Shown: piece after piece, positions 133 through 20,147 of the stretch
Numbering within the stretch: position 1 is the stretch's first letter
Layout of the letters: every line of letters starts with the position of its first letter
From: Paramicrosporidium saccamoebae KSL3
Taxonomy: Eukaryota > Fungi > Cryptomycota
Direction of reading: 5' to 3'
Assembly: GCA_002794465.1 (NCBI GenBank)
Contig: MTSL01000076.1
Location: 1-21,250, forward strand
DNA length: 21,250 bases
Position numbers and translations under genes: made by a program
The notes under the pieces: generated by a model
Databases searched by the model: none
The model's input: the letters and a program-made list of their open reading frames with translations, nothing else
What the model was told of the DNA's origin: nothing

Positions 133-3100
133 TCAGAGTTCTTCATGGGAATCGTCAGTGCTGTCATCAGTTACTTCTGTCTCACGGAGAATCTTGGCCA
201 CCTCTTCATCGTAAGTAGACCATTCGGGGATGATTCTTCGGGCTTGATCCAACTTGGTTTCGTCCTTCCGGAGGGGATTGCTGCACAGATCAATTGACTT
301 GGCCTTTGCCTTGCTTTGATCATCACACCATGTCTCACACCACAGCCATTCACTCGGCAGCGCATGGATTGGCACCTCGTGCTGCAAATTGTTGGGAAGA
401 TCCTGATCCAGGTTTGCGAGTGAAGCAGGGTCAAAAGAAAGCGGCTGATATTGGGCACGGAGACGTTCACCTACGGCCTCGGCACGGAATCGAGCCATGT
501 CCACTAGGAACAGGGCCGAGATGTGGTAGGGAAGACCACGCAAATAGTCCTCCCAATAGCCGCTCTTCCAGAATTGCAACGGAATGCTCTCCCGACGCGA
601 CTCGCAGAACGGCACAAATCCATAAACACAATCTTTCATGTCAGTGCGCGCCAGCTCTGCCACATCACCACGCATCACCTGGTCAGCATCGACATACACG
701 AGCCGTTGTACAGTGTGAGGGAAGGAATCGAGGAAGAGGATCTTGTGGGCCCAGACGCGGCGGTGTTTACGCGATTGCGGGTTTAGCCAGCCGGGCCAAT
801 GGAATCGGTGGAATTCATAGGTAAAGCCCAGGACGCCTGACAGTTTGGAAATGGACTCGCGTAGAGCGGGAGTGATAAAGTTGGCGATAATCCAAAACTT
901 GACGGGTTTGGTAGTGTTTTTACTGACACTGCGCATCATGATCAGCACAAGTCGCTCATAGACAGCCCCCGAGACGATGGTAAACACGTGAACCGTGTCA
1001 TCTTTGGTGGAAGGAAATCTACACAGCGTTAATAGAACTGATTTGGTACAATGAGGGAAGCTTTTGACGACTGAGAATGGATTCGTCGCCCATGGCAACT
1101 TCAACATTGGCGACTGCCATATTAAAGGCGAGACTTGCGAGTGGGACTATTGTAGGAGCTGAAAGTCGCAAATATTCATTTGGCGACACTTGGAGAGTGT
1201 ATAAGCCTGGATCACCATGCAATTGGGTGTATCCAGGAAAAGCCATAGAAACACTGCGATCAACCAGACGGTTATCCAGACGCAGCTCTAATGGAATTCC
1301 TTGCAACCCACGTCCCGAACTGCGCACCACTGCCTCCAAAACCAATCCCCTCAGAATTACTCGTACTGCATCAGCCGGAGAGGTAAGATTATCCATGTCG
1401 GCAGTGTCACTGGCTCCGTCAATATCCCATGCAGAAGGCGTGTTGAGCATCAGTGCATAATGACTGTCGGGGATAATATGAGTAAGGGTGCCGTCAAAGT
1501 GGCGGAACCGGTAAACTCCCTTTGCGGGCAGATCAGTGTACTTTGGCTGCACATTGGGAATGATTATTGCATCAACCATGGTCGCCAATTCCTACAATAA
1601 TCAGACCAATCGGGATAGTACGAGAAGGATTGCAGAAATCTTGGCAGCCTGCACTGAGAATGGGCTGAGAAGTACTTTGATCTGCACCAAAGCCGTCTCA
1701 TTCTCAACCTCAAAGTGGCACACTTTTTCCAGAGGAATGTCCATTACTGTCTTTCCTGTGAACAGATGGGAGTGTTTCTGCATGAGCGCTACAAGATGGC
1801 CAGTGAACAGGGTCATTTGGGTGAGCGCTGACGGCTCACGCTCCAACTCGAAATTGATACGGAGCGCCTGAAGCGTTTCTGTGCGACGCTGCCATTCCGC
1901 TTGCAGCCAAGTGGGAATGTCTGAAACGGCGACGGGAGTAGTGAAAGGACCATAAATGTGTCCGTTAATGGAGACTACAGGACCCTTATCCGCCATTTCA
2001 CATAGATCAGACACAATTTGTGAATTCTCCTCTACCCATCTCTGCAGTTCCGCATTGTCCAAGTCTTGTGGATCGTCTTCGAGACCATCCAATGCAGCTT
2101 CGGGGGTAATCTCTTTTCGATGCAGTTTCCAAAGCAGTTGTGTGTTTGTCGTGGGGGACCCAATTGGAACAATCTTTAAGCGCATTTTGCGGTCCGTTTT
2201 ACCTACCGCCTCCAACCAACTCTGTACCATTTGCACATCTCCTTGTCGATGCATCTCTGCCACCACAACCACTGCGAATGCACAATTGTCAGTGGCTCGG
2301 TCCGAGTAGATCCATTCAGTCCACGGCACCATCTTTTGTGCATAATTTTGTTGCATCGAAAAGATTTCAGAATGGCGCGACTTGAACGTCTTTTCGTCGT
2401 CCAACAGCAAAGACAGATAGTCGGACGAATCGTCAATCTGCTGCGCCATTACAGCCACCTGCAGATTGTAAATTTCCTCCTGGTAAACTTGCATCACTTT
2501 GCGTTGCCACGACTACAGGGTTAGCAGAGATTAGGGGTTACAGTGAGATTGAAATCAATTGTTCTTCCATTGACATATGCGACAATCTCATTGGGAGCTC
2601 CAAACTTGATGGCAAACTTTTTAGCTTCCTCGGCCAACTGAGTCGCCTGGGTCATTTGAATCAGATCGTCCATGTCCAGACCAGTGTTAATCTCCAATTC
2701 GCCCATCACCTCTTCCAACAAGACGGAGGTATCCACCTTTGTTCCCAATTCACGCGCCTTTAAAACCTACAAGATGTATGATTAGATCAACGCGGCTGCG
2801 GTACCCGTTTGAGGAAGGCCACGATGGCGATTCGTCCGTATTGCCGATAGACGGCATATACAGCTGCAGTTAAGGAATCCTCAGCGGCAGTAAGTACTAG
2901 AATCATTTGTACGGGAATCATTTGTCCAACCACCCGTACAATGTCCTCTAACAGACTTGACGCAAAAGAGTCCAAATCCATTACTATGGTCAGTGCCACC
3001 ACATTGCGTGCCAGCGGATAAAACTGTCCCGAGGGCGGTCTCATAAGTGCGCGGAATGTCCGTGGCCATTGTTTATAACGATGGTCCCGACTCAGATCAT

Positions 3101-4187
3101 TGAGTACAATTGCTGTTGAGGTGCGCACGTCGAATCGGAAGGGTGCAACCTGCAACGAACTTGCCATCAGCTGTCGTCCGACCATTTCAAAGTCCTCAAG
3201 CTTGAGCAAAAAACGCTTCACCAACGACTGATATTCTCCCAGAAATTCCAATAGCGTTTGGAGCTCGAAATGGAGTGACTGCACTTCGGCGCCGTTAATG
3301 GAGATGATTGTTTCGGGAAGATTAAAATGCTGGGCCAGCATTGTCGCCTTTTCAATCACCTCTTTTGTTGGTCGAACTGTCGAAAGATGCTTTACCAACA
3401 TGGGCGCATTCTCAGAGATAAAACTCAGCGACTCTAAGGGTTTTGATGAGTCCAGGATGGTCTGCAGTGCTTGCAACCCAAATTGTTCAACATTCTTGGA
3501 ATTGGCCGGATCTTCCAGTCGGTATTGGCCATGTGCAGTGTCCACGGTGATGGGAGTGGGGCCGTACCCCTTCATTTCCAACTCTAATCCGAATCCACCT
3601 AGCTCGGCGTCAGCCGGATCAGGACAGTCTCGATGCACCAAATGACGATACACATAGCGAACCTCACCATCAAGCGCTGCCTTTTTGAGGATTCGGTGGA
3701 ATGGCAGAAATGTCGGGCTGCCGATTTTTGAATAGAGTATCACCATTGAGCCACGATCGCCCAGCATATGACCATACGTGTCTTTTGGATCAGAGGCGTT
3801 TTCCTTAAGGGTTGAAATCGACTTTCCCAAATTCTCCGGATTGCAGACTGATTCGCCTTGGTATACTGCAAACGTTTCACATTCGGGCGCATCATGGGGT
3901 CTCAATTTTTCATGCACAACAATCCTCCCGGAATAGAGGCGATACTTTGCGGCCCTTTCCAACAATTCCTTTTCGGTTGGGGATAATAGGGACGAGGTGG
4001 CTTGGTCGATGGACTCTCCATTGGCAAGCCGTTCCAAAAAGGTCCAAAAGCTGTTCGGGTGCAGTATGGAGAGGAATTCGCTCGTCTCCAGGGACTGGGC
4101 GGAGCAGTAGGAGAGCCAAGGTGCCGTTACCTTGGCCGTCTCCACCACTGATAACAGTACCGACACTGCCACAAAGGAAAATCTCAT
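133..4187 (-). CDS. UGGT: UDP-glucose:glycoprotein glucosyltransferase (GT24), 5 exons, ~1308 aa
   Basis: Exons 4187-2805, 2766-2542, 2512-1622, 1591-1050, 1018-133 join in frame (3927 nt) across GT-AG introns 2767-2804, 2513-2541, 1592-1621, 1019-1049. Signal peptide MRFSFVAVSVLLSVV; GFGLELEMK motif; C-terminal GT24 domain (YER..IMM.SV, KILFLD, YVDADQ, FWKSGYW, YHISAL, NLDQDLPNN, WLWCETWC); ER-retention-like C-terminus HEEL. The ORF track start at 4229 is 14 codons upstream of the likely ATG. Confidence 0.96.
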
Positions 4188-4417
4188 AGCGATGTCCGGC
4201 GTCCAAGTACAATTAAGGGGGCGTCTCAATATTTGCCAAATTAGTACAGATCAGGATCCTAAACCTTTAAATTTGCCACATCTCAGTGTAATCACTATTA
4301 GAGCATCGTTTCGCTTCTATTGGCATTAAAGCCAGGCATATCATCACACTCGGATTTACCATGACTCACAAATGACCATAATGACCCCCTCCTCTGACCA
4401 GGAGTAGTGGGACAAAC

Positions 4418-5584
4418 ATGCATGTTACAGAGGAGGACTCTTTAAACGTTGCGAGCGACTCTACTGCTTTGAGCGAACAGTCAAAGTCGCATTACTCTGA
4501 GCGTGACAAGACGTACTTTTTCTACTATGCCCTGCTGAGTCACCAGCAGAACATGTTGATGGACTCGGTCCGTACCACTGCCTATCATACTGCCATTACG
4601 CAAAATGTCGCTGACTTTGCGGGAAAGGTGGTCCTGGACGTCGGCGCGGGTACAGGAATCTTGTCATTCTTTGCGGCCCAAGCCGGTGCACGTCGGGTGT
4701 ACGCTGTAGAGGCCTCCAATATGGCGGCACATGCCGAGACATTGGTAAAGGCCAATGGTATGCAGACCATCATCAAGGTGGTAAAGGGCAAGATTGAAGA
4801 AATTGAATTGCCCGAAAAGGTGGATGTTATTATTTCCGAGCCCATGGGGGTGCTGCTCGTGCATGAGCGCATGATGGAGACGTTTATCATTGCCCGAGAC
4901 CGATTTCTAAAACCGGCGGGAGCAGTGGTAAAGCCAAACCAAATGTTCCCCTCCACCGGCAGCATCTATATTGCACCCTTCTCGGATGTTGGCTTGTTGG
5001 CAGATGCGATTGGCAAAATTGATTTTTGGGAGAATAAGGAATTTTATGGAGTGGACCTGAGCTCACTCTATGATGCGGCAGCCGTGGGACAAGTCTCCCA
5101 GGCCGTCATTGGCACTGTGGATCCAAAGAGTCTCCTGGCCCCGCCGGCATTGCAGGAATTTGACTTTACCAAGGTCACGGTGGAGGGGATGCGTGAATTT
5201 ACTATTCCGCTCTCCTTCACTGCCACGGCCACTGGCCTGATGCATGGAATTGCTGGCTGGTTCGATGTCATCTTTATGGGCAGTGAGCTGACTAAACAAC
5301 TCACCACCTCTCCCTCCAACGACACCACTCATTGGTATCAGATGCGTTTCATCCTCAATCGTCCCTTTGCCGTCAACCGCGGTCAAAAAGTCACTGGCAC
5401 TCTTCACTTCCAAGCCAACGACCAGCGCTCCCACAATTTGCATCTGAAGCTGCAATTGGTGGGGACGGAGGTGGAAACGGAGGCCTGGTACGCATTGCAT
5501 GACCAGACATATTGGAATCTGAGCGGCACCTCGACGGCATCTCCCGAAAGTCAGGGTATCTATACGCGATTTTTGAATAGCTAA
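4418..5584 (+). CDS. CARM1: Type I protein arginine methyltransferase, CARM1/PRMT4-like catalytic core, 388 aa, no intron seen
   Basis: YF..Y..LS.QQNM..D.VRT helix, VLDVGAGTGILSFFAAQAGA (SAM motif I), AVEAS, double-E loop ISEPMG..L..ERM, HGIAGWFDV and THWYQ loop. QQNM and THWYQ are CARM1-type rather than PRMT1-type. Confidence 0.88.
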   Translation: MHVTEEDSLNVASDSTALSEQSKSHYSERDKTYFFYYALLSHQQNMLMDSVRTTAYHTAITQNVADFAGKVVLDVGAGTGILSFFAAQAGARRVYAVEASNMAAHAETLVKANGMQTIIKVVKGKIEEIELPEKVDVIISEPMGVLLVHERMMETFIIARDRFLKPAGAVVKPNQMFPSTGSIYIAPFSDVGLLADAIGKIDFWENKEFYGVDLSSLYDAAAVGQVSQAVIGTVDPKSLLAPPALQEFDFTKVTVEGMREFTIPLSFTATATGLMHGIAGWFDVIFMGSELTKQLTTSPSNDTTHWYQMRFILNRPFAVNRGQKVTGTLHFQANDQRSHNLHLKLQLVGTEVETEAWYALHDQTYWNLSGTSTASPESQGIYTRFLNS

Positions 5585-5637: not shown

Positions 5638-6882
5638 ATGTTGCTGTGGAATGTAACATTAATCTCCTGGTTAAGTGTCTTGGCGGTGGAAATTGTCCTG
5701 TTGGCCTATGAGAGACCGGAGGAGACGCTGAGATGTCTGCGTTCTCTGGAGACGGCCTTTTATCCAAGTGGAACTGTGATACCGCTAAGTGTCCGGGTGG
5801 ACCGTCACCTCAGTGGAACAGTAAACCAAGGCCTAATCGAGACGATCAGGTCTTTTAACTGGACGCACGGCACAATGAGCATCTTCATCCATCCAGAGCA
5901 TATAGGCTTACAACGCCAATGGCTCTCGGTTGTGGCTACCGACTATACTCTCATTATTGAAGATGACATTGTAGTCAGTCCATTCTATTATTATGCACTC
6001 TCTCATGCTCTAAAGTACAGTCAGCAAAACTTATTGGGCATCAGTCTGCAGCGTCCACAATGGCAAATTGGCGTCAATGAGCATGGACGATTTCGACGTT
6101 TGGATCTACTCTGCGCGCCGCCACTCTACGCGTTCCAGGCCCCATCCACCTGGGGCTTGCTTGTCTTTCCAAAACCATGGAATACACTTTGTAGTACTCA
6201 AGCCATGAGATGGATGGATGGCGCAATCACGACAAAGTGGGCGATTGAGCGTGAATCCGGGCTCATTAGCCCACTAATTGAAGAGTTTTTAGTTGAGCGG
6301 GAAATGAGTATCTTATGGTTTTGGCCTGGGAATCGGACAGTCTTGGCTACTTCTAGGAATGCTATGAGAGGCCACTACGATGACCTGCTATTGGATGATG
6401 AAAGATTTCTGAAGAGGCTAGATCGTTTCGAGCGTCCTTTAAAAGCGTTTAGCCACCTCAGGGTGGCCATGCTTCCTAGCCATTCCAGAGTTACTCCAAT
6501 GTTTCCTAACCATTCCAGAGTTACTCCAATGCTTCCTGATCATTCCAAAGCTACTCTAATGTTTCCTGATCATTCTAAAACTTTTCCAATGTTTTCTGGA
6601 TGCTTTGATCGCATTGAATTTGAGGGAGATTATCCCTCCGTGTGGAGGGGAAAGGATCCTTTGAGATTTGCTGCAGTGATAAGGCATTTACGAAATGTGT
6701 GCCGGATCGCCAAAGTCAACGTTGTGGGAGGCGAGGATGGCTCGGGGGCATTGGACCCAGTCAATTACAATTTTGACTGCAATGTCTATTCTATTCATTC
6801 TATGGGAATTGAGCCTCCCCTTCCGAGCATTAGATGCAATTACACAATCGGTCTATATCCCCATAATACAAGCCCGATATAG
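5638..6882 (+). CDS. Putative GT-A-fold glycosyltransferase of unknown specificity, 414 aa
   Basis: Hydrophobic N-terminus; IVLLAYERP...LRCLRSL; GLQRQWL; LIIEDDIVVSPFYY (EDD metal-binding motif); GISLQRP; STWGLLVFPKPW. Resembles, from memory, an uncharacterised plant/algal glycosyltransferase-like family. Contains an internal 10-aa repeat. Confidence 0.7.
   Translation: MLLWNVTLISWLSVLAVEIVLLAYERPEETLRCLRSLETAFYPSGTVIPLSVRVDRHLSGTVNQGLIETIRSFNWTHGTMSIFIHPEHIGLQRQWLSVVATDYTLIIEDDIVVSPFYYYALSHALKYSQQNLLGISLQRPQWQIGVNEHGRFRRLDLLCAPPLYAFQAPSTWGLLVFPKPWNTLCSTQAMRWMDGAITTKWAIERESGLISPLIEEFLVEREMSILWFWPGNRTVLATSRNAMRGHYDDLLLDDERFLKRLDRFERPLKAFSHLRVAMLPSHSRVTPMFPNHSRVTPMLPDHSKATLMFPDHSKTFPMFSGCFDRIEFEGDYPSVWRGKDPLRFAAVIRHLRNVCRIAKVNVVGGEDGSGALDPVNYNFDCNVYSIHSMGIEPPLPSIRCNYTIGLYPHNTSPI
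6469..6597 (+). repeat. Coding 30-bp tandem repeat, ~4.3 copies (MLPSHSRVTP / MFPNHSRVTP / MLPDHSKATL / MFPDHSKTFP)
   Basis: Units start at 6469, 6499, 6529, 6559 and 6589 (partial); consensus atgyttcctrrycattccararytactcca. Confidence 0.95.
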
Positions 6883-11053: not shown

Positions 11054-11208
11054 TTAAACTCCGAAATCAATTTCGGATGGGTCTAGACATATTTGGAGCA
11101 AATGCTGATTTGAATTGTTGCGTGATGGGAGTAATACCACGATATCGACCTAAATGAGCGGCAGGGAACTATTCATTGCCAGTTGGTATTGACTCGCCGA
11201 CTTGGCGT

Positions 11209-11414
11209 CCAAACATTAGATGGACAGTATTCAAAACATTAGATGGACAGTATTCAAAACATTAGGTGGACAGCATTCAAAACATTGGAGAATGTCGTGT
11301 CCAAACATTGGCAGGTCGAAATGTTCAAACATTGGAGAATTAACACGTCCAAACACGCCCAAACACGTCCAAACACGTCCAAACACGTCCAAACACGTCC
11401 AAACATGTCCAAAC
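11209..11414. repeat. Compound intergenic minisatellite: six 23-24 bp units followed by six 10-bp units, all starting AAACA
   Basis: Units at 11211, 11234, 11257 (aaacattagrtggacagyattca); 11280, 11303, 11327 (aaacattgg plus variable tail); then aaacacgtcc-type 10-mers at 11351-11410. Confidence 0.95.
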
Positions 11415-11555: not shown

Positions 11556-13127
11556 CTAACGTCTCATCTTGACGACACCCTCTTCCGTCACCGGAAACGC
11601 CTCCATGACAAAGGTCGTTGGCGCGGGCCCCTCGGGCGTCATGACGGGAGACCGATCGTACTTTTCCTCCTCTCCAGGCTGATACTGATGATATTGGAGC
11701 TGTTTGAGGGGCGACTGACGACGACGGCCGGGACGTTTCCGACGAGGAACATGGTCAATCAGGGCATCGAGAGGCACAATATCCGCAAGAGAGGGGGAGG
11801 AGGCGGGGAGGGGATCCTGGGAGAGAAAGGCCTCTAGGGCGGCGGCAGTGGAGACGTCCTCGGGGAGGGGCTCATCAACAGGCTTGGGCCTCTTGCGGGT
11901 GACATTGCGGCCTTTGGGCTTCTTGATGGGCTTTACATGGGGATCCTTGTCCTTGGTGGCCTGAAGCATCTCGAGCTGCTGTTGTTTGGCGGCGGCCTGT
12001 TGGGCAATGTAATCTTCGTCAAGTGTCCAAAAACCGCCCTTTCCAGGCTCATCGTGCGGCCGCGGTACCTTTTTGAAGCATTTGTTAAGAGACAAATTGT
12101 GCCGGATGCTGTTCTGCCATGCCGCCTCGGCCGTACGGTAATAAGGAAAACGGTCCTTGATCCAATCGTAAATGCCACTGAGAGTCAATTTGGCGCCATC
12201 ACATTCGCGCAAAGCTTGACTGATCAGAGCAGCATAGCTGTAGGAGGGCTTTTGGTAAATCTTTCCATCATCACCCACCACGGAAGGCACACCATTGATA
12301 TTAGTTGCCGCCCGTCCCACTACTGTGGGTTTGGCATTGGAGGAAAAGGAGAAACAGTTTTGCGCATAGTTGGGATGGCCTGTTTTGCGCTTGGTGCTCA
12401 ACTTGCCCAATAAGTTTGGCTTGATTGGTCGAGTCTCAATGTTACGAGGAAAGGATGCAGCCGAAAAGGCATTAAAGTGGGGATTGGCATAAGAGGCGGG
12501 CTGTTGGTAAAGAGCCTCAAAGAACTCGCTACTCATCACATCGGACGGCTTGACGTGCGGCACGGGTGGAGCACTGTTGTTTCCATTGTACGGAGTGCTG
12601 GCATATGAATCGTCAGCTGCAACGGCGGCAGCACCGAAAAAGTCGAAAAATTGGCCATGCGGATGGGGCGGATGTGTCCAACTGTCGCCATATTGTCCGT
12701 GTTCCCCATATGGTCGCGAATCATCCAGCGCCGGATACCAAATGGCGTCTGGCAGTTTTACTGGCATTGACAGGTCCAAACTGTCCAAGGTTGTCTCGCC
12801 GGTGCTACGTTGTCCCTCCAGTGCATAGTGCATCGTGGGTAGCTGCCAGTTTCCATCATAGTAGCCCGATTCTCCGTGCAATTGGTACCCGCCCTGGAAC
12901 GGCCAACTCAGATCAAACAATGCCTCGCCCTTTCCCTCGCCCGGCCCTGGGAGCTGATTCTGGTAGCCTTCGGCCATGCACAGCTGTGCCAGTGGATCCA
13001 GTCCCTCCACCAGCTCCTCCTCCTCGCCCTTTCTCTTTCCTCCCCCCCATTCCTCACCTGGACGCTTCGCATCCCCCGACACCCGCACCGTTGTCATCTC
13101 AATGCCCTCCGACCCCGCCTTCAACAT
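11556..13127 (-). CDS. Forkhead (winged-helix) transcription factor, up to 523 aa
   Basis: [14 protein letters not shown]...[17 protein letters not shown]...[34 protein letters not shown] at about 12255-12015; the rest is low-complexity with basic NLS-like patches. Start codon uncertain (13127 or 13097). Confidence 0.95.
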
Positions 13128-13246
13128 GATCTGAGCACGCCCACCCCGCTCTGTTTACCCCCTTTTCCTCCCAGGAATATTTCCTTTTTGGGACACTTCT
13201 TTTTCCCAAATTGGTTATCATTCCTGATTGGCCGTGACGCGAGGAT

Positions 13247-13295
13247 GAGGTGTGAGGTGTGAGGTGCGAGGGGGGGAGGGGGAGGGGCAGAGGGG
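13247..13295 (+). promoter_or_regulatory. (GAGGTGT)x3 repeat plus G-tract cluster upstream of the forkhead gene; potential G-quadruplex
   Basis: 13270-13295 reads G7-A-G5-A-G4-CAGA-G4; gaggtgt repeats at 13247, 13254 and 13261. Regulatory function is not shown. Confidence 0.35.
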
Positions 13296-13473
13296 TTAAA
13301 GTAAGATGGTGGGCCAAGTTAGCAGGGTTCTCAGGGTGGACAAGTCAAATTAATGGGTCAAGCATAGCAAATTAATAGGACAAATAGACCAAGAAAAGAG
13401 AATGGGATTGGAAAATGGATTTGCCCAATTAAACGACTTTAAAGCAATCAATTTACAATGTACTATTCAGCTT

Positions 13474-13966
13474 CTATGGACAAGGCGGGAGGAACTTTGA
13501 GGGCGGTTTGCGATGACCGTAGCCTTCAAAGAGCTCGTATATGCTATACACTCGACACTCCAATCCGGGTCGTTTCACATTGCCATACAGAGAGGCTTCA
13601 ATAATGTCCAGCTCCGGCTCGGTGTATTTTCGGGCGCAGCTGTAGCCTGCCAGTTTGGTGGGGTCGTTGGATTCGTTGCCCTTGTACCGATTGACCCGGG
13701 TTTGTAGGATCTGGCAATTACTCACTTCAGTCTTTCCACCCTTTGAGAACGGCGTAATGTGATCATATTCATGACAGAGACAGCCCTCGCAGCCTCGAAG
13801 TCGGTACGACACGATATTACCTGTCGCGTCCAGACGCCATCTGTCACCGTCACGGCCAGGTGCTTCGGTCGACTGCAATTAATCCACTCAAAACGCCTAC
13901 CTTTTTCCAACACTGTTCCTTCATTAATCGCGTAAAGATGCGAAGGTCCCCCTCCGTTGCGGTCAT
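13474..13966 (-). CDS. Stand-alone HNH-family endonuclease-like protein, 2 exons, 154 aa
   Basis: Exons 13966-13901 and 13872-13474; intron 13873-13900 (gtaggc...ttaattgcag). MTATEGDLRIFTRLMKEQCWKKSTEAPGRDGDRWRLDATGNIV..CEGCLCHEYDHITPFSKGG....NCQILQTRVNRYK: DH..P.SKGG..N...N beta-beta-alpha-metal motif. Confidence 0.88.
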
Positions 13967-14085
13967 TTACTGAAAATTAATTACCGCACTTCCAGAGCAA
14001 TTCCAATGTAAGCGACTGAATTTGCATGAGGCTAATAGTAAGACTGTTTATTAGAATCTATAGGTGTACCATTTCAAAAATACAT

Positions 14086-15030
14086 TTATTCCTGTTGCAT
14101 CAATCTACGGGCACGTTCTCGGAGCTGCAAGGTAACGTCATCATCAGAGGAGTAGGAAGAAGAGACAGGTGATCTAGGAGATGCGGGTGATGCAGGTGAT
14201 CCGGGTGGGGTGGCGGGAGCGTGCATACGACGAGGTGGGGACAGGGAGATTTGCCGACGTGAAGATTGAGAGCCTTGCTTCTGTGGTGATTTATGACGGA
14301 TTGGACTACAGCTTGGAAGTCTAGTATTCTGTCGTCGGGGACTTTGTCGTTCTGGGACGTGTCTCTCTGGACTGTGTCTCCTTGAACTGTGCCTCTCTGG
14401 ACTATGTCTCCTTGAACTGTGTCTTTCTGGACTGTGTCTCCTTGAATTGTATCTCTGTGGACTGCGCCTTACCGGACTATACCTTGATGGACTACACCTT
14501 GATGGACTATGCCTTGATGGACTATGCCTTGATGGGCTGCGAAAAGTTTGACGACGGGATGTATTGTCATTCCTCTTGCCATATCTTTTATTATTCCCAC
14601 CATTGTTTCCTTTGAGAGCTTCTCGTTCCGTTTCTTCTTGCAAGACTTTTTTGTATTCTTCTTCTAGTTCTATGGGTATTCCCCCGTTCTGCTTTGCCTT
14701 GCCAACCCATCCCCACAACTCAAAGACGAATTTTTCGGCATGGTCAGCTCCCATGAAGGGAGTTAGGAGAACTCGAAGGTCACCAGCCTCGACCGTTTCA
14801 CGCTCAGCCAGCGTATTGATGACGAGTTCAAGTAGCACTTCATCAGAAATTCCCACCAACTCGGAGAGTCTGCGGTCCATCCAACCCCGCAGACTAGGAA
14901 GAACAACACCAACGAGAGAGAGACGAGTTAGGGTGGAAAGGGATTTGGAAAGTTTGGCCTGTTGTCGTTCGTAGCGAACATCACCACTCTTGACGCCAGG
15001 TAGAAAGGTGCCACCACTACCTCCTCCCAT
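14086..15030 (-). CDS. SRRM1: PWI-domain RS-repeat splicing factor, SRRM1/SRm160-like, 314 aa
   Basis: N-terminus aligns with SRRM1 (F..G...D.R...Q.KL; W...R..E..G..D.V..E...N.L; L..F.....A..F..ELW; ..GIP), followed by SP.R repeats. Confidence 0.85.
   Translation of the reverse strand: MGGGSGGTFLPGVKSGDVRYERQQAKLSKSLSTLTRLSLVGVVLPSLRGWMDRRLSELVGISDEVLLELVINTLAERETVEAGDLRVLLTPFMGADHAEKFVFELWGWVGKAKQNGGIPIELEEEYKKVLQEETEREALKGNNGGNNKRYGKRNDNTSRRQTFRSPSRHSPSRHSPSRCSPSRYSPVRRSPQRYNSRRHSPERHSSRRHSPERHSSRRHSPERHVPERQSPRRQNTRLPSCSPIRHKSPQKQGSQSSRRQISLSPPRRMHAPATPPGSPASPASPRSPVSSSYSSDDDVTLQLRERARRLMQQE
14340..14538 (-). repeat. Coding 15-bp tandem repeat (SPSRH / SPERH / SSRRH pentapeptides) with a 30-bp higher-order dimer
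   Basis: ccttgatggactayr units around 14480-14538; alternating SPERH-SSRRH units around 14360-14450. Confidence 0.9.
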
Positions 15031-16723
15031 GTCACCGACTGACCGCGGTTACACAGATATGGACGACATGGAAGGCATAGAAGGAATGGACGACTCGCTG
15101 TACGACTTGGAGTCGGTGGATTATTCCAGTCTGTCAGTGGCACTGGCTGAGCAGTTGCAGGGCGTGGATGGCCATTTCAACATGTTGCCGTATCTTGAGC
15201 CGTCCGCCGACTTGTCCCAATTGCTAATACTGAATCGAAGATACCAACAGACGCTGCGAGAACAGTTGGTGGCGGTGGAAGAGGCCCAGAAGACGACGAG
15301 GGAACTGCAACGATGGCTAAAGATGCTGGAAACGCAACTGCGGAACCGCAAAAAACCTACAGACGGCGTTTTTGCTCTACCCCGTGCCATTGTCGACCGT
15401 CGAGGCAATACTCCACCCGAAGATGCAGAAACACGGCATTACCGTCAAGTGTTGATGGAATACAATAGGGCGCTGCGTTTTACACTGCGATGGTCGGAAC
15501 GCGAACGGTTCTGTTTGGCACGGGGAGTGCGTCAACAGAACCGTCTACTCTTGGTGGACCAAATTCTGGATGGAGAACACATTTTGGGTTATATGGGTTA
15601 TGGGAGGGTGCAGGTTTATGAGCAGGCAGTGGAGACGGTGCGTCGGATGAGCGAGAGAGAGTTGGAAATGAATTTGGAAGGATTAGATTGGACGCAGATG
15701 TCCATCTCGCATGTTCCCTCACGATCAGCCGATGACTGTCGGATCCAATGGACTACAAATGATCATCCTGTAATCAGTCATGCGCCCTTTCTTCCCGAAG
15801 AAAAAGAGCGTCTCGCTGCATTGGTGAAAAAGTATGGGCCACGGGGAGAATGGGTGACAATTGCAAAAAGTCTGCAGAGTAATCGGACGGCGTGGCAATG
15901 TCTGGCGCAATGGCAATTGCGGAACAACCGGGCCCGCGGAGGAGGCAAATGGACAGCCGATGAGGATCGTATTCTTATTGAAGGAGTACGCATGGGCGGT
16001 CTGGACAGTTGGGCGGAGATTAGCGAATTGTTGGATGGACGGTCGGTCAGCCAATGCACCCATCGATGGAGCAAAACTCTTGATCCGTCTAAACGGATTG
16101 GTCGTTGGACGGAAACGGAAGATGCGTGGCTATTGGCGGCAGTAAGACGGTTGGGCTGTATGAACTGGGCCCTCATAAGGGACTTTGTTCCCCGGCGCAC
16201 CGATGTCCAATGTCGGGAGCGCTATATGAATGTATTGCATCCCAATCTGATCCACAACATCTTTTCCCCCGAAGAGGAGGAAACCTTGCGCAGGGCTGTG
16301 GAAAAGTACGGAGAGGGGAGATGGTCACTGGTGGCAGCAATGCTGCGCACTCGCACTGATAACCAATGTCGACGACGATGGATGTCCATGCGGACGGGAA
16401 AGCCCGAGAAGCCGCGCAAAAGACTCGGTCGACCGAAAAAGCCTACCAAGCCACCTCGAGGACGTCCCCGAAAGAGGCATGTCGAGAATAAAGAGCCTGA
16501 TGAAGCAGATGGATCAGGTAGAGTGGATGAGGCGGGTGAATTAGGTAAAGTGGGTGAATCTAGTAACTCGGGGAAATCTATCAACTCGAGAAAGTCTGCC
16601 AACTCGGAGAGACCTAACAACTTGGGGAAGTCTACCAGCTCGGAAAACTCTGGAGAATCTGATAATCCTGAAAAATCTACACATTCCACAAGACTCAAGA
16701 GATCCAAGAAATCTAATAAATGA
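15029..16723 (+). CDS. SNAPC4: snRNA-activating protein complex subunit 4 (SNAP190)-like Myb protein
   Basis: N-terminal LILNRRYQQTL.EQL coiled-coil like SNAPC4 LQLN..YQ..I.EKL; PPE.AET; RW...ER..L..GV; half Myb repeat (LDW..MS...V.SRS..DCR..W...DHP.I) plus four full Myb repeats. First in-frame ATG is 15029; 15059 has better context. The ORF-track start at 14990 is TTG. Confidence 0.85.
   Translation: MSPTDRGYTDMDDMEGIEGMDDSLYDLESVDYSSLSVALAEQLQGVDGHFNMLPYLEPSADLSQLLILNRRYQQTLREQLVAVEEAQKTTRELQRWLKMLETQLRNRKKPTDGVFALPRAIVDRRGNTPPEDAETRHYRQVLMEYNRALRFTLRWSERERFCLARGVRQQNRLLLVDQILDGEHILGYMGYGRVQVYEQAVETVRRMSERELEMNLEGLDWTQMSISHVPSRSADDCRIQWTTNDHPVISHAPFLPEEKERLAALVKKYGPRGEWVTIAKSLQSNRTAWQCLAQWQLRNNRARGGGKWTADEDRILIEGVRMGGLDSWAEISELLDGRSVSQCTHRWSKTLDPSKRIGRWTETEDAWLLAAVRRLGCMNWALIRDFVPRRTDVQCRERYMNVLHPNLIHNIFSPEEEETLRRAVEKYGEGRWSLVAAMLRTRTDNQCRRRWMSMRTGKPEKPRKRLGRPKKPTKPPRGRPRKRHVENKEPDEADGSGRVDEAGELGKVGESSNSGKSINSRKSANSERPNNLGKSTSSENSGESDNPEKSTHSTRLKRSKKSNK
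16565..16654 (+). repeat. Coding 18-bp degenerate tandem repeat x5 (NSGKSI-like) in the SNAPC4 tail
   Basis: Units at 16565 aactcggggaaatctatc, 16583, 16601, 16619 and 16637. Confidence 0.8.
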
Positions 16724-16897
16724 GCATTTGTATAAATGATGGACATGGGATAAGGATTCTCATGATTGCACCAAGGATGTTACAATGGAAAACTGTATCA
16801 AAGTTGGAAAAATCTTTATAAACAATTGTACCTACCCTATACCCTATGACTTGTGACTACAAATCCTAGTCATGCCATGTAGTCACTCACTGTGTGG

Positions 16898-17359
16898 TTA
16901 CTCAATTAGAGAACCAACCATCTTGAACAGATAGTAGAAAAATGAAAGCAGAAAAAAACCCAACTTGGCAAATGACTCTTTCTTCTTGGCGGGCATCACT
17001 CTAAAAACATCGGTTGGCTCGATCCGTGTTCGTCCGTCCCGCAGCTGCACCGCCATGTACGCTACAAGAGGTACGTTCCATAAAACCCCCGTGATCTGCA
17101 GGCCGAGTAGTAGCAGACCTGACAGAAAAAAGTGAAGGAATACTTCGGGAATGAAAAACTATCATTAGACTCGTCAGTCTGGTTTACCTGGTTGAGCCGA
17201 CGACATAGGTCGATCGGGTTGACATAGTCCATCTCCAGGTCTGAGAACATTATTATCTACAGGTCATCCAAATGACATTGGGGGTACATAGTAAACATTG
17301 ATGAAGAGGAGGACGGCCGACAAGAGGGCCGCCGTCAAGAAGAGCAAAGTCACCAGCAT
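16898..17359 (-). CDS. ERV14: Cornichon / Erv14 ER cargo receptor, 3 exons, 133 aa (not in the ORF track as one gene)
   Basis: Exons 17359-17288, 17256-17188, 17158-16898; introns 17257-17287 and 17159-17187. MLVTLLFLTAALLSAVLLFINVYYIIMFSDLEMDYVNPIDLCRRLNQFFIPEVFLH...WNVPLVAY...PTDVFR....KKESFAKLGFFLLSFFYYLFKMVGSLIE; has the DLE.DY.NPI.LC, NVPL.AY and KESF.KLGF signatures. Confidence 0.96.
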
Positions 17360-17367
17360 GACCCCGG

Positions 17368-18276
17368 ATGACCCCGTTGGTGGAATATGCGCTGCTTGAC
17401 CCCGACAGTCGTCAGGAATGGGTGGTGCCGGTGTTGCGTGAATATCTGCCGCAAATTGGCAGCCTTCCAGAGGCTGAGGTGGTTTGGGGACTGTGGCTTG
17501 AGGGTCTGTGGACGGGAATGGACGATGTTTTGACAGCGGTAGCCCTGCAGGCGCTACTTCAGGATCGAACCGCTTCCCTCTCGTTGGATCCAAAACGATT
17601 AATGCAGGCCAATTTGATCCAAAAAGGCATTGTATTCTGGAGGATATATTTGCATCTTCTTCAGCGGGTCATTGCGTCCATTGACAAGTTTGATGTGATT
17701 ACTTTTTTATTCCCATATGCCGAGGATTTGGATTGTCGTCGGATTATCATTTCCTTTATACATCAGCTGTTTTTGGAGAATGCGTCTCTTATCAAGAGGT
17801 TTCACAGTTCACCCTATCCAGTGGAGATGGTTCCCTGGATGGTAGAGTATGCACCCTCTACCCGTAAGAACATTAGGGTTGTCTAAGTTTTAGATGTTCT
17901 CATTGAATCAGTTCCGGCCCAGATTACCGCCGCACAAGCTCTCGATCTGTTCCGCGCCCACTTGGGAGTCAATCTGGCCCTCAAATATCCTTTGCCTGCA
18001 ACCCAGGATCTTTGCCAACGAATCATTAACCATTGCCAAAAGTACGGCGCCTCGACTGTCTCGGATGCAAAAGAGTCGCTCAAGATTATGGTGCTGGCCC
18101 TCAAGGCCTTTCCAAATCTCATGCCCATGGTGGCTCCCGTACTGGCGACCTGGACGGGGATGTTTGGCGCGGAGCCCGAATTTGTCGCAGCCACCTTGAC
18201 AGCGGCGCAGCAGATTGCTCAGATCACAGCCCTTGTACAGCTGCCCATCTACCGCAAGAGACAGAGTGTCTTGTAG
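17368..18276 (+). CDS. INTS2: Integrator subunit 2-like protein, C-terminal region only, 2 exons, 292 aa
   Basis: Exons 17368-17863 and 17894-18276; intron 17864-17893 (gtaaga...ctaagttttag). LSLDP..L; RRIIISFIHQLFLEN.SL.K.FH..PYP.E..P..V...PSTHVLIES.P; LALKYPLP; AFP.L. These parallel the recalled INTS2 C-terminus (ICS.LHQM.I..P...KLVHFQGYP.ELL...V.GIPSMH; Y.LPKS; AFPPL). Confidence 0.72.
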
Positions 18277-18332
18277 GAGGGAAGGATGGTGAGATCTAAC
18301 ATGTAAAGTAAAAAATAATGGATTGGTGTTAA

Positions 18333-19889
18333 ATGTATCCCACCTCGAGGATTCCTGTACCGCGTTCTGTCAAGCGCTATCCGCCCGACGCAACTCATCG
18401 TATTGCCCTTGCCTCCTCTCCTTCTCAGCAAAAGGCGGCTCGTACAGCCTTGCGCTCTCCTCGTAAGTTTGCTCCTCTTAGTCCGTCGACGGCAATGCGC
18501 CGAATTTCATTCGCTCCGACCCCGAAACGGAATACCCGACTGTCCATGTACGGAGTGCCCGTGGGGTTGGAGAAGAGACAGGGAGGTTCACGACGCGCCT
18601 TGAACGACGGAAAACGGATTATGGTGTGTGCGAGGAAAAGGCCAATGTCCTCGGCCGAATTACGGACTAATGCCACCGATTGCATGACGGTGGATTGTGA
18701 ACGGAATACCCTAAAGATTTCGGCATCGCGGACAAGACTAGATGGACTGACAAAGTATGCAGAAGACTTTGACTTTAGTTTCGATCGCGTCTTTGATGCT
18801 GATGCCTCCAACTCCAAGGTTTACCGGCAAGTCGTGCGTCCCTTGGTAGAGTTTGCATTGAAAGGCGGAAAGTCTACGTGTTTTGCCTATGGGCAGACTG
18901 GCAGTGGAAAGACACACACCATGTTCCATCCCAAAGATGGACTCTGCAATGCGGCCATTAAAGAGATCCTAGAAGCATCTGGCTCGGACGGATGCTACAT
19001 TAGCTTCTTTGAAATTTATCAAAGCCAGCTGTATGATTTGCTGCGGGAGAGGAAAAAGGTAGTTCCCTGCGAAAGGTCGGACGGACAGGTCAAGATCATG
19101 GGACTCGGTGAGGATCATGTGTCGACTGCTGAAGAATCCCTCCAACTGATCCAACGAGGTCTTGCCACACGAGTGACTGGAAAGACGGGTGCTAATGCTC
19201 AATCGTCTCGCAGCCATGCAATTCTGCAATTTTCGCTAAAGCCCTCATCTGATTGTGGACGTCTGACGTTTATTGATTTGGCTGGGAGTGAGCGGGGAGC
19301 CGATCGTGCTGAGGTTGATTATCGGACAAAGTTGGAAGGATCAGAGATTAATAAGAGTCTTCTTGCCTTGAAGGAATGCATTAGGGCAATGGATATGGCC
19401 TCTTCTCATTTCCCCTTTCGACAGAGCAAACTGACGCTCGTCCTGAAGAATTCGATTATCGGAAATGTGCGCACAGCAATGATTGCAACCGTCTCACCGA
19501 CATTGCAAAGCTGTGAACACACTCTGAACACACTAAGATATGCCGATAGGTTCCGAGATTTGGGGGCGAATAATAGGGCCGAGACAGAGGTGGAGATGGA
19601 GATGGAGGTGGATGATAGTGATGCCTCGGAAGGTTTTGATGGGGAGGAGAATGAACCATTGGGAAATACAAACAGTTGGACCGTCTCGCCAATGCCACGA
19701 GATCGGGCAACGCCTGTAAAAACGGTCACTTTTGCCTCGCCCGATCGACTAGAAAGAAGACGTAGAACTGTAATGGACACTATAACACGTCTGCAGCATC
19801 ATGTACAGCAATGCACCGATGCTGATGTTTTGGAACTGTTGGGAGAGGAATTGGTGACTCTGACCAGCGCATTCCAAACTTTGGCCTGA
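18333..19889 (+). CDS. Kinesin-13 family microtubule depolymerase, 518 aa
   Basis: I.VCARKRP; loop-2 RLDGLTKY (KVD-like); FSFDRVF; CFAYGQTGSGKTHTM; SSRSHA; FIDLAGSERGAD; EINKSLLALKECIRA (KEC motif); CEHTLNTLRYADR; motor in internal position. Confidence 0.93.
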   Translation: MYPTSRIPVPRSVKRYPPDATHRIALASSPSQQKAARTALRSPRKFAPLSPSTAMRRISFAPTPKRNTRLSMYGVPVGLEKRQGGSRRALNDGKRIMVCARKRPMSSAELRTNATDCMTVDCERNTLKISASRTRLDGLTKYAEDFDFSFDRVFDADASNSKVYRQVVRPLVEFALKGGKSTCFAYGQTGSGKTHTMFHPKDGLCNAAIKEILEASGSDGCYISFFEIYQSQLYDLLRERKKVVPCERSDGQVKIMGLGEDHVSTAEESLQLIQRGLATRVTGKTGANAQSSRSHAILQFSLKPSSDCGRLTFIDLAGSERGADRAEVDYRTKLEGSEINKSLLALKECIRAMDMASSHFPFRQSKLTLVLKNSIIGNVRTAMIATVSPTLQSCEHTLNTLRYADRFRDLGANNRAETEVEMEMEVDDSDASEGFDGEENEPLGNTNSWTVSPMPRDRATPVKTVTFASPDRLERRRRTVMDTITRLQHHVQQCTDADVLELLGEELVTLTSAFQTLA

Positions 19890-19895
19890 TCAAAA

Positions 19896-20147
19896 TTACT
19901 GTCCTTGTGCAGTAGAGAATTGATGGATCTATTACTGGAATTGTGCAGTGGAGAATTGATGGATTTATTACTGTCCTCATGTAGTGGAGAATTGATGAAT
20001 TTATTGCTGATATTATGCAAATTAAGGCTGTATTCCAGTGTACTGACATTATGCAAGTTAAGGCTGTATTCCAGTGTACTGACATTATGCAAGTTAAGAG
20101 AGTATTCCAGTGTACTGACATTATGCAAATTAAGAGTGTATTTACAT
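19896..20147. repeat. 36-bp tandem array, 7 copies in two sub-types (3 + 4)
   Basis: Type A units at 19896, 19932, 19968 (ttactg....gtgcagtrgagaattgatggatyta); type B units at 20004, 20040, 20076, 20112 (gtactgacattatgcaarttaagr..gtattccagt). Confidence 0.95.

Follow-up and report, generated by a model that had tools for sequence, protein, structure and literature searches.

In Microsporidia, 5' untranslated regions (UTRs) are shorter than 7 nt, a CCC-like (rarely GGG-like) motif is found directly upstream of most start codons, and the S16 and L13 genes of Encephalitozoon cuniculi lie head to head, 35 bp apart (PMC2803860). Overlapping transcripts are frequent in E. cuniculi as well as in Antonospora locustae (PMC2742732). 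Divergent pairs of genes whose intergenic distance is short are preferentially conserved, probably through overlapping promoter elements (PMC2871058). Microsporidia form a single clade with the Rozellomycota (PMC5701793), to which Paramicrosporidium saccamoebae, an intranuclear parasite of the amoeba Saccamoeba, belongs. The genome of strain KSL3 (MTSL00000000) measures 7.28 Mb, has a GC content of 47% and carries 3750 gene models; intergenic distances in this species are not analysed in PMC12449221. Here we describe a junction between two divergent genes in a stretch of 21,250 nt of this genome (bases 1-21250 of contig MTSL01000076.1, assembly GCA_002794465.1; hereafter the window), at which a cornichon gene and a gene encoding the C-terminal domain of Integrator subunit 2 (hereafter INTS2-C) start 8 bp apart. 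The junction is probably the outcome of extreme but ordinary genome compaction acting on an old, conserved bidirectional pair.

The locus resembles the head-to-head genes of the related Microsporidia in that divergent genes lie tens of bases or less apart, with no room for separate conventional promoters (PMC2803860). The spacer is shorter than that of S16/L13 (8 versus 35 bp), and the P. saccamoebae genome, unlike that of E. cuniculi, keeps many very short introns. Fungal and animal bidirectional pairs such as HSPD1/HSPE1 (PMC2871058) are likewise divergent and closely spaced, and keep their adjacency across deep divergence despite changing neighbours, which is usually explained by promoter elements that overlap and that rearrangement cannot pull apart. 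Such pairs, however, are defined by their transcription start sites, with tens to hundreds of bp of non-coding sequence in between, whereas in the present case only 8 bp separate the ATGs themselves. No functional connection is evident between the products of cornichon and INTS2-C, an endoplasmic reticulum (ER) cargo receptor and an Integrator-related domain.

Read on the plus strand, the junction is ...CACCAGC ATGACCCCGG ATGACCCCGT TGGTG..., positions 17357-17377 being C ATGACCCCGG ATGACCCCGT. The CAT at 17357-17359 is the minus strand ATG of cornichon, with its first base at 17359, and the plus strand ATG at 17368 begins the INTS2-like open reading frame (ORF) 17368-17886; the 8 bp in between, GACCCCGG (17360-17367), constitute the spacer. 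Both start positions and their distance had been given in a preliminary description of this stretch, all of whose factual statements on the sequence were found to be correct. The two genes, the models of which were verified, are adjacent, lie on opposite strands and diverge.

Judged by sequence conservation, ATG 17359 of cornichon and ATG 17368 of INTS2-C are the true translation starts, since each protein aligns from Met1 in seven relatives. Residues 1-50 of INTS2-C are conserved in these seven relatives, and the five closest show no variation at Met1 and Leu4, which leads us to reject a start at the downstream Met of WTGMDD, an outcome that the preliminary description had named as counting against its own reading. 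A conserved block (L-x-E/Q-Y ... IVPVLREYLP) starts two to seven residues past Met1 in the relatives, P. saccamoebae having the shortest N-terminus (M-TP-L). The INTS2-C frame is closed by a TGA at 17359-17361, two codons 5' of the ATG on the plus strand, and no AG is found between this TGA and the ATG; hence no upstream exon can be joined in frame and there is no N-terminal extension. An upstream INTS2-C exon, or a cornichon gene nested in an INTS2 intron, is thereby excluded, also because the relatives have different upstream neighbours. Cornichon exon 1 has 24 codons in all lineages and always starts from Met1 (MLVTLLF.., MWTTLLF.., etc.), and there is no in-frame ATG upstream of the cornichon start. 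The cornichon strand is free of any ATG for 269 nt 5' of the start (17360-17627, minus strand), a run of a length seen at only 0.8% of contig positions. This run could indicate a long leader that is antisense to the 5' coding region of INTS2-C; it is not common to the relatives.

The junction was compared with those of seven metagenomic relatives (L002, L003, L005, L006, L009, L010 and L011), which together with P. saccamoebae make eight lineages. Four of the relatives' INTS2-C proteins (327-345 aa, 40-50% identity) came from metagenome and Logan assemblies; three more distant ones were found by a profile search of 1.8 billion representatives. Cornichon (minus strand) and INTS2-C (plus strand) are head to head in all eight lineages. 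The ATG-to-ATG spacer measures 8 bp in P. saccamoebae, 14 bp in L005, 26 bp in L002, 43 bp in L003, 60 bp in L006, 103 bp in L009, 205 bp in L011 and 239 bp in L010. In a maximum likelihood (ML) tree P. saccamoebae and L002 are sisters (support 95/95), the three lineages with long spacers group together (95/96) and those with short spacers are nearest to P. saccamoebae. Since the relatives' spacers range from 14 to 239 bp and that of the sister lineage is 26 bp, the ancestral junction is, on this comparison, a longer spacer rather than a shared CATG, and the 8 bp are the derived end-point of shrinkage. The idea, raised in the preliminary description, that an ancestral CATG shared by both genes was split by a duplication thus finds no support. 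In L003 the INTS2-C ATG lies within a CATG (827-830), and the minus strand ATG of that CATG is in frame with, and 45 nt upstream of, the cornichon start (784); it is a potential alternative cornichon start that would share the CATG and extend the protein by 15 residues.

The genes around the pair, encoding a forkhead protein, a PWI domain protein (SRRM1-like), SNAPC4 and a kinesin, recur in the relatives' contigs (L002, L005, L006, L009, L010 and L011), in an order and orientation that differ. Among the adjacencies of this neighbourhood that of cornichon and INTS2-C is the only invariant one. The PWI gene is found downstream of INTS2-C in L002 and L006, while SNAPC4 is head to head with the kinesin gene in L010 and L011, at 38 and 131 bp respectively. 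In P. saccamoebae the neighbourhood (forkhead, PWI, SNAPC4, cornichon, INTS2-C, kinesin; 11556-19889) includes three genes, SNAPC4, INTS2-C and PWI, that relate to small nuclear RNA (snRNA) synthesis, snRNA processing and splicing.

By its sequence, the minus strand gene encodes an ER cargo receptor of the cornichon/Erv14 family (Erv14/CNIH), as the preliminary description had named it. It consists of three exons: exon 1 at 17288-17359, with the start codon at 17359-17357, encodes MLVTLLFLTAALLSAVLLFINVYY and has peptides of the same length in the seven relatives; it is followed by intron 1 (17257-17287, 31 nt), exon 2 (17188-17256), intron 2 (17159-17187, 29 nt) and exon 3, which includes the stop (16898-17158). 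Both introns are of the GT..AG type, their positions are common to the relatives and the spliced frame is open throughout. The resulting protein of 133 aa matches Pfam Cornichon (PF03311) with 131.6 bits, residues 5-125 aligning to profile positions 2-122 of 122, hence over its full length. The deposited model has only 38 aa (17188-17359). Deposited gene models for this genome were made with Maker/Augustus using Rhizopus as training species, and the ultra-short introns of 29-31 nt are mishandled in both cornichon and the INTS2-like gene.

The plus strand gene encodes a stand-alone C-terminal helical domain of Integrator subunit 2, 292 aa in length. Exon 1 (17368-17863), the N-terminus of which aligns from Met1 in seven relatives, is separated by an intron of 30 nt (GTAAG...TTTTAG, 17864-17893) from exon 2 including the stop (17894-18276). 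The relatives support this junction: the spliced sequence APSTHVLIES matches the intron-less relatives P0003 and P0004 as well as PSMHICLD of human INTS2, and the alignment with the human protein spans the junction. The deposited product, hypothetical protein PSACC_01048 (286 aa), is spliced differently, its intron being misplaced. The 292 aa protein scores 51.3 bits against Pfam INTS2 (PF14750; cut-off 25), with residues 123-249 aligned to profile positions 906-1038 of 1050, whereas exon 1 alone scores 22.2 bits; passing the cut-off adds to the support for the splice junction. Human INTS2 is matched at residues 995-1083 of 1204 (E=1.2e-5), and the part of INTS2 that is present corresponds to human residues about 870-1204.

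In the profile search, INTS2 proteins of 827-1642 aa, including chytrid INTS2, are matched only in their C-terminal 250-300 aa. The AlphaFold model of P0004 (pLDDT 88.5, pTM 0.83) has TM-scores of 0.69-0.73 to the INTS2 chains of Integrator structures. INTS2-C thus resembles human (PDB 7CUN/7PKS/7YCX) and chytrid INTS2 in the sequence and predicted fold of the C-terminal domain of some 300 residues, whereas the N-terminal portion of human INTS2 (~870 residues) is absent from the P. saccamoebae gene and from those of the seven relatives. Neither the 292 aa gene nor these seven relatives show the architecture of full-length INTS2, i.e. about 1000-1200 aa covering the whole 1050-position model: INTS2-C relatives (P0002-P0007, P0010, P0017) have 316-367 aa, versus 827-1130 aa for chytrid INTS2. 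The short proteins form a monophyletic clade in the ML tree (support 100/100), and in at least seven other lineages the short form occurs intact, with conservation from end to end at 30-54% identity. The name INTS2 in the preliminary description is therefore overstated, in that only the C-terminal quarter is present. A search for a separately encoded N-terminal part, using residues 1-720 of Powellomyces INTS2, matched only Geranomyces orthologues, and is uninformative for this query. The stand-alone domain may be all that the clade retains of this Integrator subunit.

The start region contains a direct repeat of 10 bp, as had been reported. Copy 1, ATGACCCCGG (17358-17367), carries an ATG that overlaps the cornichon start codon by two bases, and copy 2, ATGACCCCGT (17368-17377), comprises the INTS2-C start codon, the Thr and Pro codons and the first base of the Leu codon. 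The copies are identical at nine of ten positions, the exact 9-mer ATGACCCCG being present twice, one base apart, and deletion of 17358-17367 indeed leaves a CATG shared by both genes. The probability of a match of at least 9/10 at one given site is 3.0e-5. In random windows generated by a first-order Markov model, a mean of 0.385 loci with a period of 10 and a 9/10 match is found, and 31% of such windows have at least one. The repeat is not significant window-wide; it is unusual only for its position on the start codon, at roughly 0.01 post hoc. The window has ~2.6 times as many short tandem duplications as expected (20 loci of period 8-15 versus 7.6; TRF reports 21 arrays), and slippage is therefore active, which makes a real duplication of 10 bp plausible, albeit unproven. 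As regards a single-copy state in the relatives, these have at most 54% protein identity and are too diverged for the spacer to be aligned. Since the duplicated unit contains an ATG, its duplication would have been neutral for both proteins, and the repeat may well be an incidental micro-duplication. A spacer motif common to copy 1 and the relatives (ACCCC or ATG..ACCCC..GG) was considered and rejected, given that the best k-mers were equalled in 97-237 of 300 composition-preserving shuffles.

Copy 1 also opens a potential upstream ORF (uORF), MTPDDPVGGICAA, that runs from ATG 17358 to the TGA at 17397-17399; it has 13 codons, is out of frame and overlaps the INTS2-C start, exactly as calculated in the preliminary description. 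ATG 17358, which precedes the main ATG by 10 nt, has an A at -3 (17355), versus a C for ATG 17368. Further ATGs upstream of INTS2-C are located at 17301 and 17272. ATG 17358 would matter only if the 5' end of the INTS2-C mRNA lies upstream of 17358, in which case scanning ribosomes would be caught there and only leaky scanning would lead to the main ORF. That the uORF is a functional translational regulator, conserved in the clade, that keeps INTS2-C low in this manner, we consider improbable. Its ATG does have the better context, upstream ATGs occur in four of the five compact spacers, and in L002 and L006 they give rise to uORFs, 9 and 15 codons long, which reach or overlap the main ATG. Such a presence is, however, within the expectation from composition-preserving shuffles (P=0.07), L005 lacks an upstream ATG, position, frame, length and peptide all vary, and the presence of 17358 in the mRNA is assumed. 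A conserved uORF was accordingly rejected.

How transcription could be accommodated in such a junction can be outlined from its geometry. A deletion bias would have removed intergenic DNA right up to both coding sequences, so that a single bidirectional initiation zone would have to serve both genes, its determinants residing largely inside the two coding regions. With an 8 bp gap between the ATGs the transcription starts are expected to be close or crossed: the mRNAs would have either very short leaders, with transcription of INTS2-C starting within 17359-17367, or 5' ends that overlap in antisense. This would agree with the short leaders and overlapping transcripts measured in Microsporidia (PMC2803860, PMC2742732), and with the resistance of close divergent pairs to separation (PMC2871058). 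The 9/10 repeat would then most simply be a small duplication of the start region by replication slippage, or a chance match, that leaves the proteins unchanged, and for its upstream ATG (17358) to work as an inhibitory overlapping uORF it would have to be transcribed. The near-zero spacing of the neighbouring PWI/SNAPC4 pair, described below, would be an independent, lineage-specific outcome of the same compaction rather than evidence of a dedicated start-to-start mechanism.

Crowding continues downstream. The kinesin gene (18333-19889, plus strand) starts 56 bp past the INTS2-C stop on the same strand, and over so short a stretch (18277-18332) INTS2-C must overlap at its 3' end with the promoter and leader of kinesin. 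In Microsporidia, crowding makes transcripts start or end in neighbouring genes (PMC2742732), which is the likely state of cornichon, INTS2-C and kinesin here. The microsporidian overlaps were shown by transcript mapping and are mostly 3' read-through, whereas the case of P. saccamoebae is deduced from geometry.

A further likeness to Microsporidia (PMC2803860) is the C-rich sequence directly 5' of the INTS2-C ATG (CCCC at -7 to -4) and the G-rich sequence 5' of that of cornichon (GGGG at -6 to -3). The junction lacks an AAATTT-like element, though, and a CCC-like motif is not general on the contig. No use of the microsporidian start signal by P. saccamoebae is therefore claimed.

The CATG at 15028-15031, 2.3 kb from the junction, contains the first in-frame ATG of both the PWI gene (15030, minus strand) and the SNAPC4 gene (15029, plus strand). 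The PWI start is robust, with an in-frame TAA seven codons upstream and a conserved TFLPGVK block from residue 8. For SNAPC4 the start may be either 15029 (C at -3, T at +4) or the deposited 15059 (G at -3, G at +4), and conservation of the SNAPC4 N-terminus is too low to choose between them. Of the names SRRM1 and SNAPC4 given in the preliminary description, the latter holds for the Myb-repeat gene (PDB 7xur_A, E=1.6e-47), while for the PWI gene the likeness to SRRM1 is limited to the PWI domain. The claim of a second pair sharing a CATG likewise stands as far as the first in-frame ATGs are concerned, and hinges on the ambiguous start of SNAPC4.

Seven divergent pairs were surveyed in 39.7 kb of the contig. 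Spacers measure 230 bp for UGGT/PRMT, -2 (first ATG) or 28 bp (deposited start) for PWI/SNAPC4, 8 bp for cornichon/INTS2-C, 631 bp for a 243-aa gene and SAM, 187 bp for MT10/JAB, 865 bp for ClpB/BPL_N and 228 bp for HSP70/LRR-EEP. Two of the seven are thus below 30 bp and the remaining five range from 187 to 865 bp, which bears out that two neighbouring divergent pairs have near-zero gaps and shows them to be outliers. The adjacency of PWI and SNAPC4 is confined to the P. saccamoebae lineage and derived, and the SNAPC4 start is ambiguous, so that the recurring start-to-start architecture suggested in the preliminary description is unsupported.

Alternative explanations of the junction differ in what they make of the repeat and of the INTS2-like gene. 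In one, the two genes first shared the palindromic CATG, as PWI and SNAPC4 may do, a recent tandem duplication of 10 bp then created the 8 bp gap together with the uORF, and shared or abutting starts represent a recurring, selected architecture. The repeat is real and the loss of one copy restores a shared CATG with both proteins unchanged; the per-site chance of a 9/10 repeat exactly on the start codon is low (3e-5), the window is rich in short tandem duplications (20 versus 7.6 expected) and a second near-zero pair lies 2.3 kb away. Overlapping starts are, however, found in no relative, where spacers are 14-239 bp (26 bp in the sister), a repeat of this period and identity is expected 0.39 times per window by chance, and the adjacency of the second pair is not conserved. 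Moreover, the CATG of that pair rests on a putative SNAPC4 start flanked by C at -3 and by T at +4, where the depositors use 15059. We therefore regard this scenario as unlikely. An artefact, with the INTS2-like ORF as the truncated remnant of a pseudogene or as a mis-annotation, or with the 10 bp repeat as an assembly or sequencing error, would fit a protein without about three quarters of INTS2 and deposited models that are visibly imperfect (38 aa for cornichon, a misplaced intron for INTS2). It is very hard to reconcile with a short form preserved intact from end to end in seven or more other lineages (30-54% identity), in a clade with 100/100 support, and with a relative's model that folds with high confidence as the INTS2 C-terminal domain; the repeat is not of low complexity, both ORFs are intact and the relatives' spacers are comparable or longer. 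We hold an artefact to be highly improbable.

Compaction without a dedicated start-to-start architecture is preferred because the cornichon/INTS2-C adjacency is the only invariant one, its spacer has progressively shrunk and the PWI/SNAPC4 adjacency is derived. Several points weigh against this preference. What it says of promoter and leaders we infer from geometry. Even on this contig near-zero spacing is the exception, with five of seven divergent pairs at 187 bp or more, and the 39.7 kb sampled amount to about 0.5% of the genome. Nor is the CCC-like signal of Microsporidia general: CCC occurs within 10 nt upstream in only 3 of 23 listed starts, for which reason it was also rejected as a general signal that would explain the repeated ACCCC. 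A purine is present at -3 in ~70% of these 23 starts, which suggests ordinary scanning and leaders of at least a few bases.

Gene identities in the first 8 kb of the window were assigned by Pfam on ORFs. The minus strand ORFs 133-1107, 1019-1588, 1601-2497 and 2787-4229 are exons of a single gene for UDP-glucose:glycoprotein glucosyltransferase (UGGT; 133 to about 4187, first ATG 4187) with the domains Thioredoxin_12/13/14, UDP-g_GGTase and Glyco_transf_24. Divergent from it, at the 230 bp given above, an arginine methyltransferase gene (PRMT) starts at 4418 on the plus strand, and a metallophosphatase gene is also found in this part. No transfer RNA genes were found in the window. Tandem arrays are located 3' of the kinesin gene (two of 36 nt, 19905-20142), at 11207-11414 (23/24 nt and 10 nt), inside the PWI gene (15/30 nt, 14339-14535), in the C-terminal region of SNAPC4 (18/36 nt, 16557-16648) and inside ORF 5638-6882 (30 nt, 6469-6598). 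The spliced cornichon and INTS2-C proteins have no record in the protein collection searched, and the kinesin protein was found, by exact lookup, on one contig only.

The junction reveals no new mechanism. It corrects local annotations, in that cornichon has 133 rather than 38 aa, the intron of the INTS2-like gene was misplaced and the SNAPC4 start is ambiguous. Its novelty is modest and lies in part in the clade-specific mini-protein that consists of the INTS2 C-terminal domain alone and in part in the spacer series of eight lineages, a graded set for testing promoter and leader requirements. One orthologous pair shows loss of intergenic DNA down to 8 bp between starts, with both genes intact and still paired, so that what is known from Microsporidia is seen in relatives that are less reduced as well. 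More tentatively, and with some doubt, the transcription start signals of both genes in the Paramicrosporidium clade may lie wholly inside coding sequence and the mRNAs may be nearly leaderless or overlap 5' to 5'. Microsporidian-style expression would then predate Microsporidia proper and be present in mitochondrion-bearing Rozellomycota, with the spacers of 239 > 205 > 103 > 60 > 43 > 26 > 14 > 8 bp as a test system. If so, this series would be a ready system for studying how a bidirectional promoter of RNA polymerase II survives the loss of intergenic DNA.

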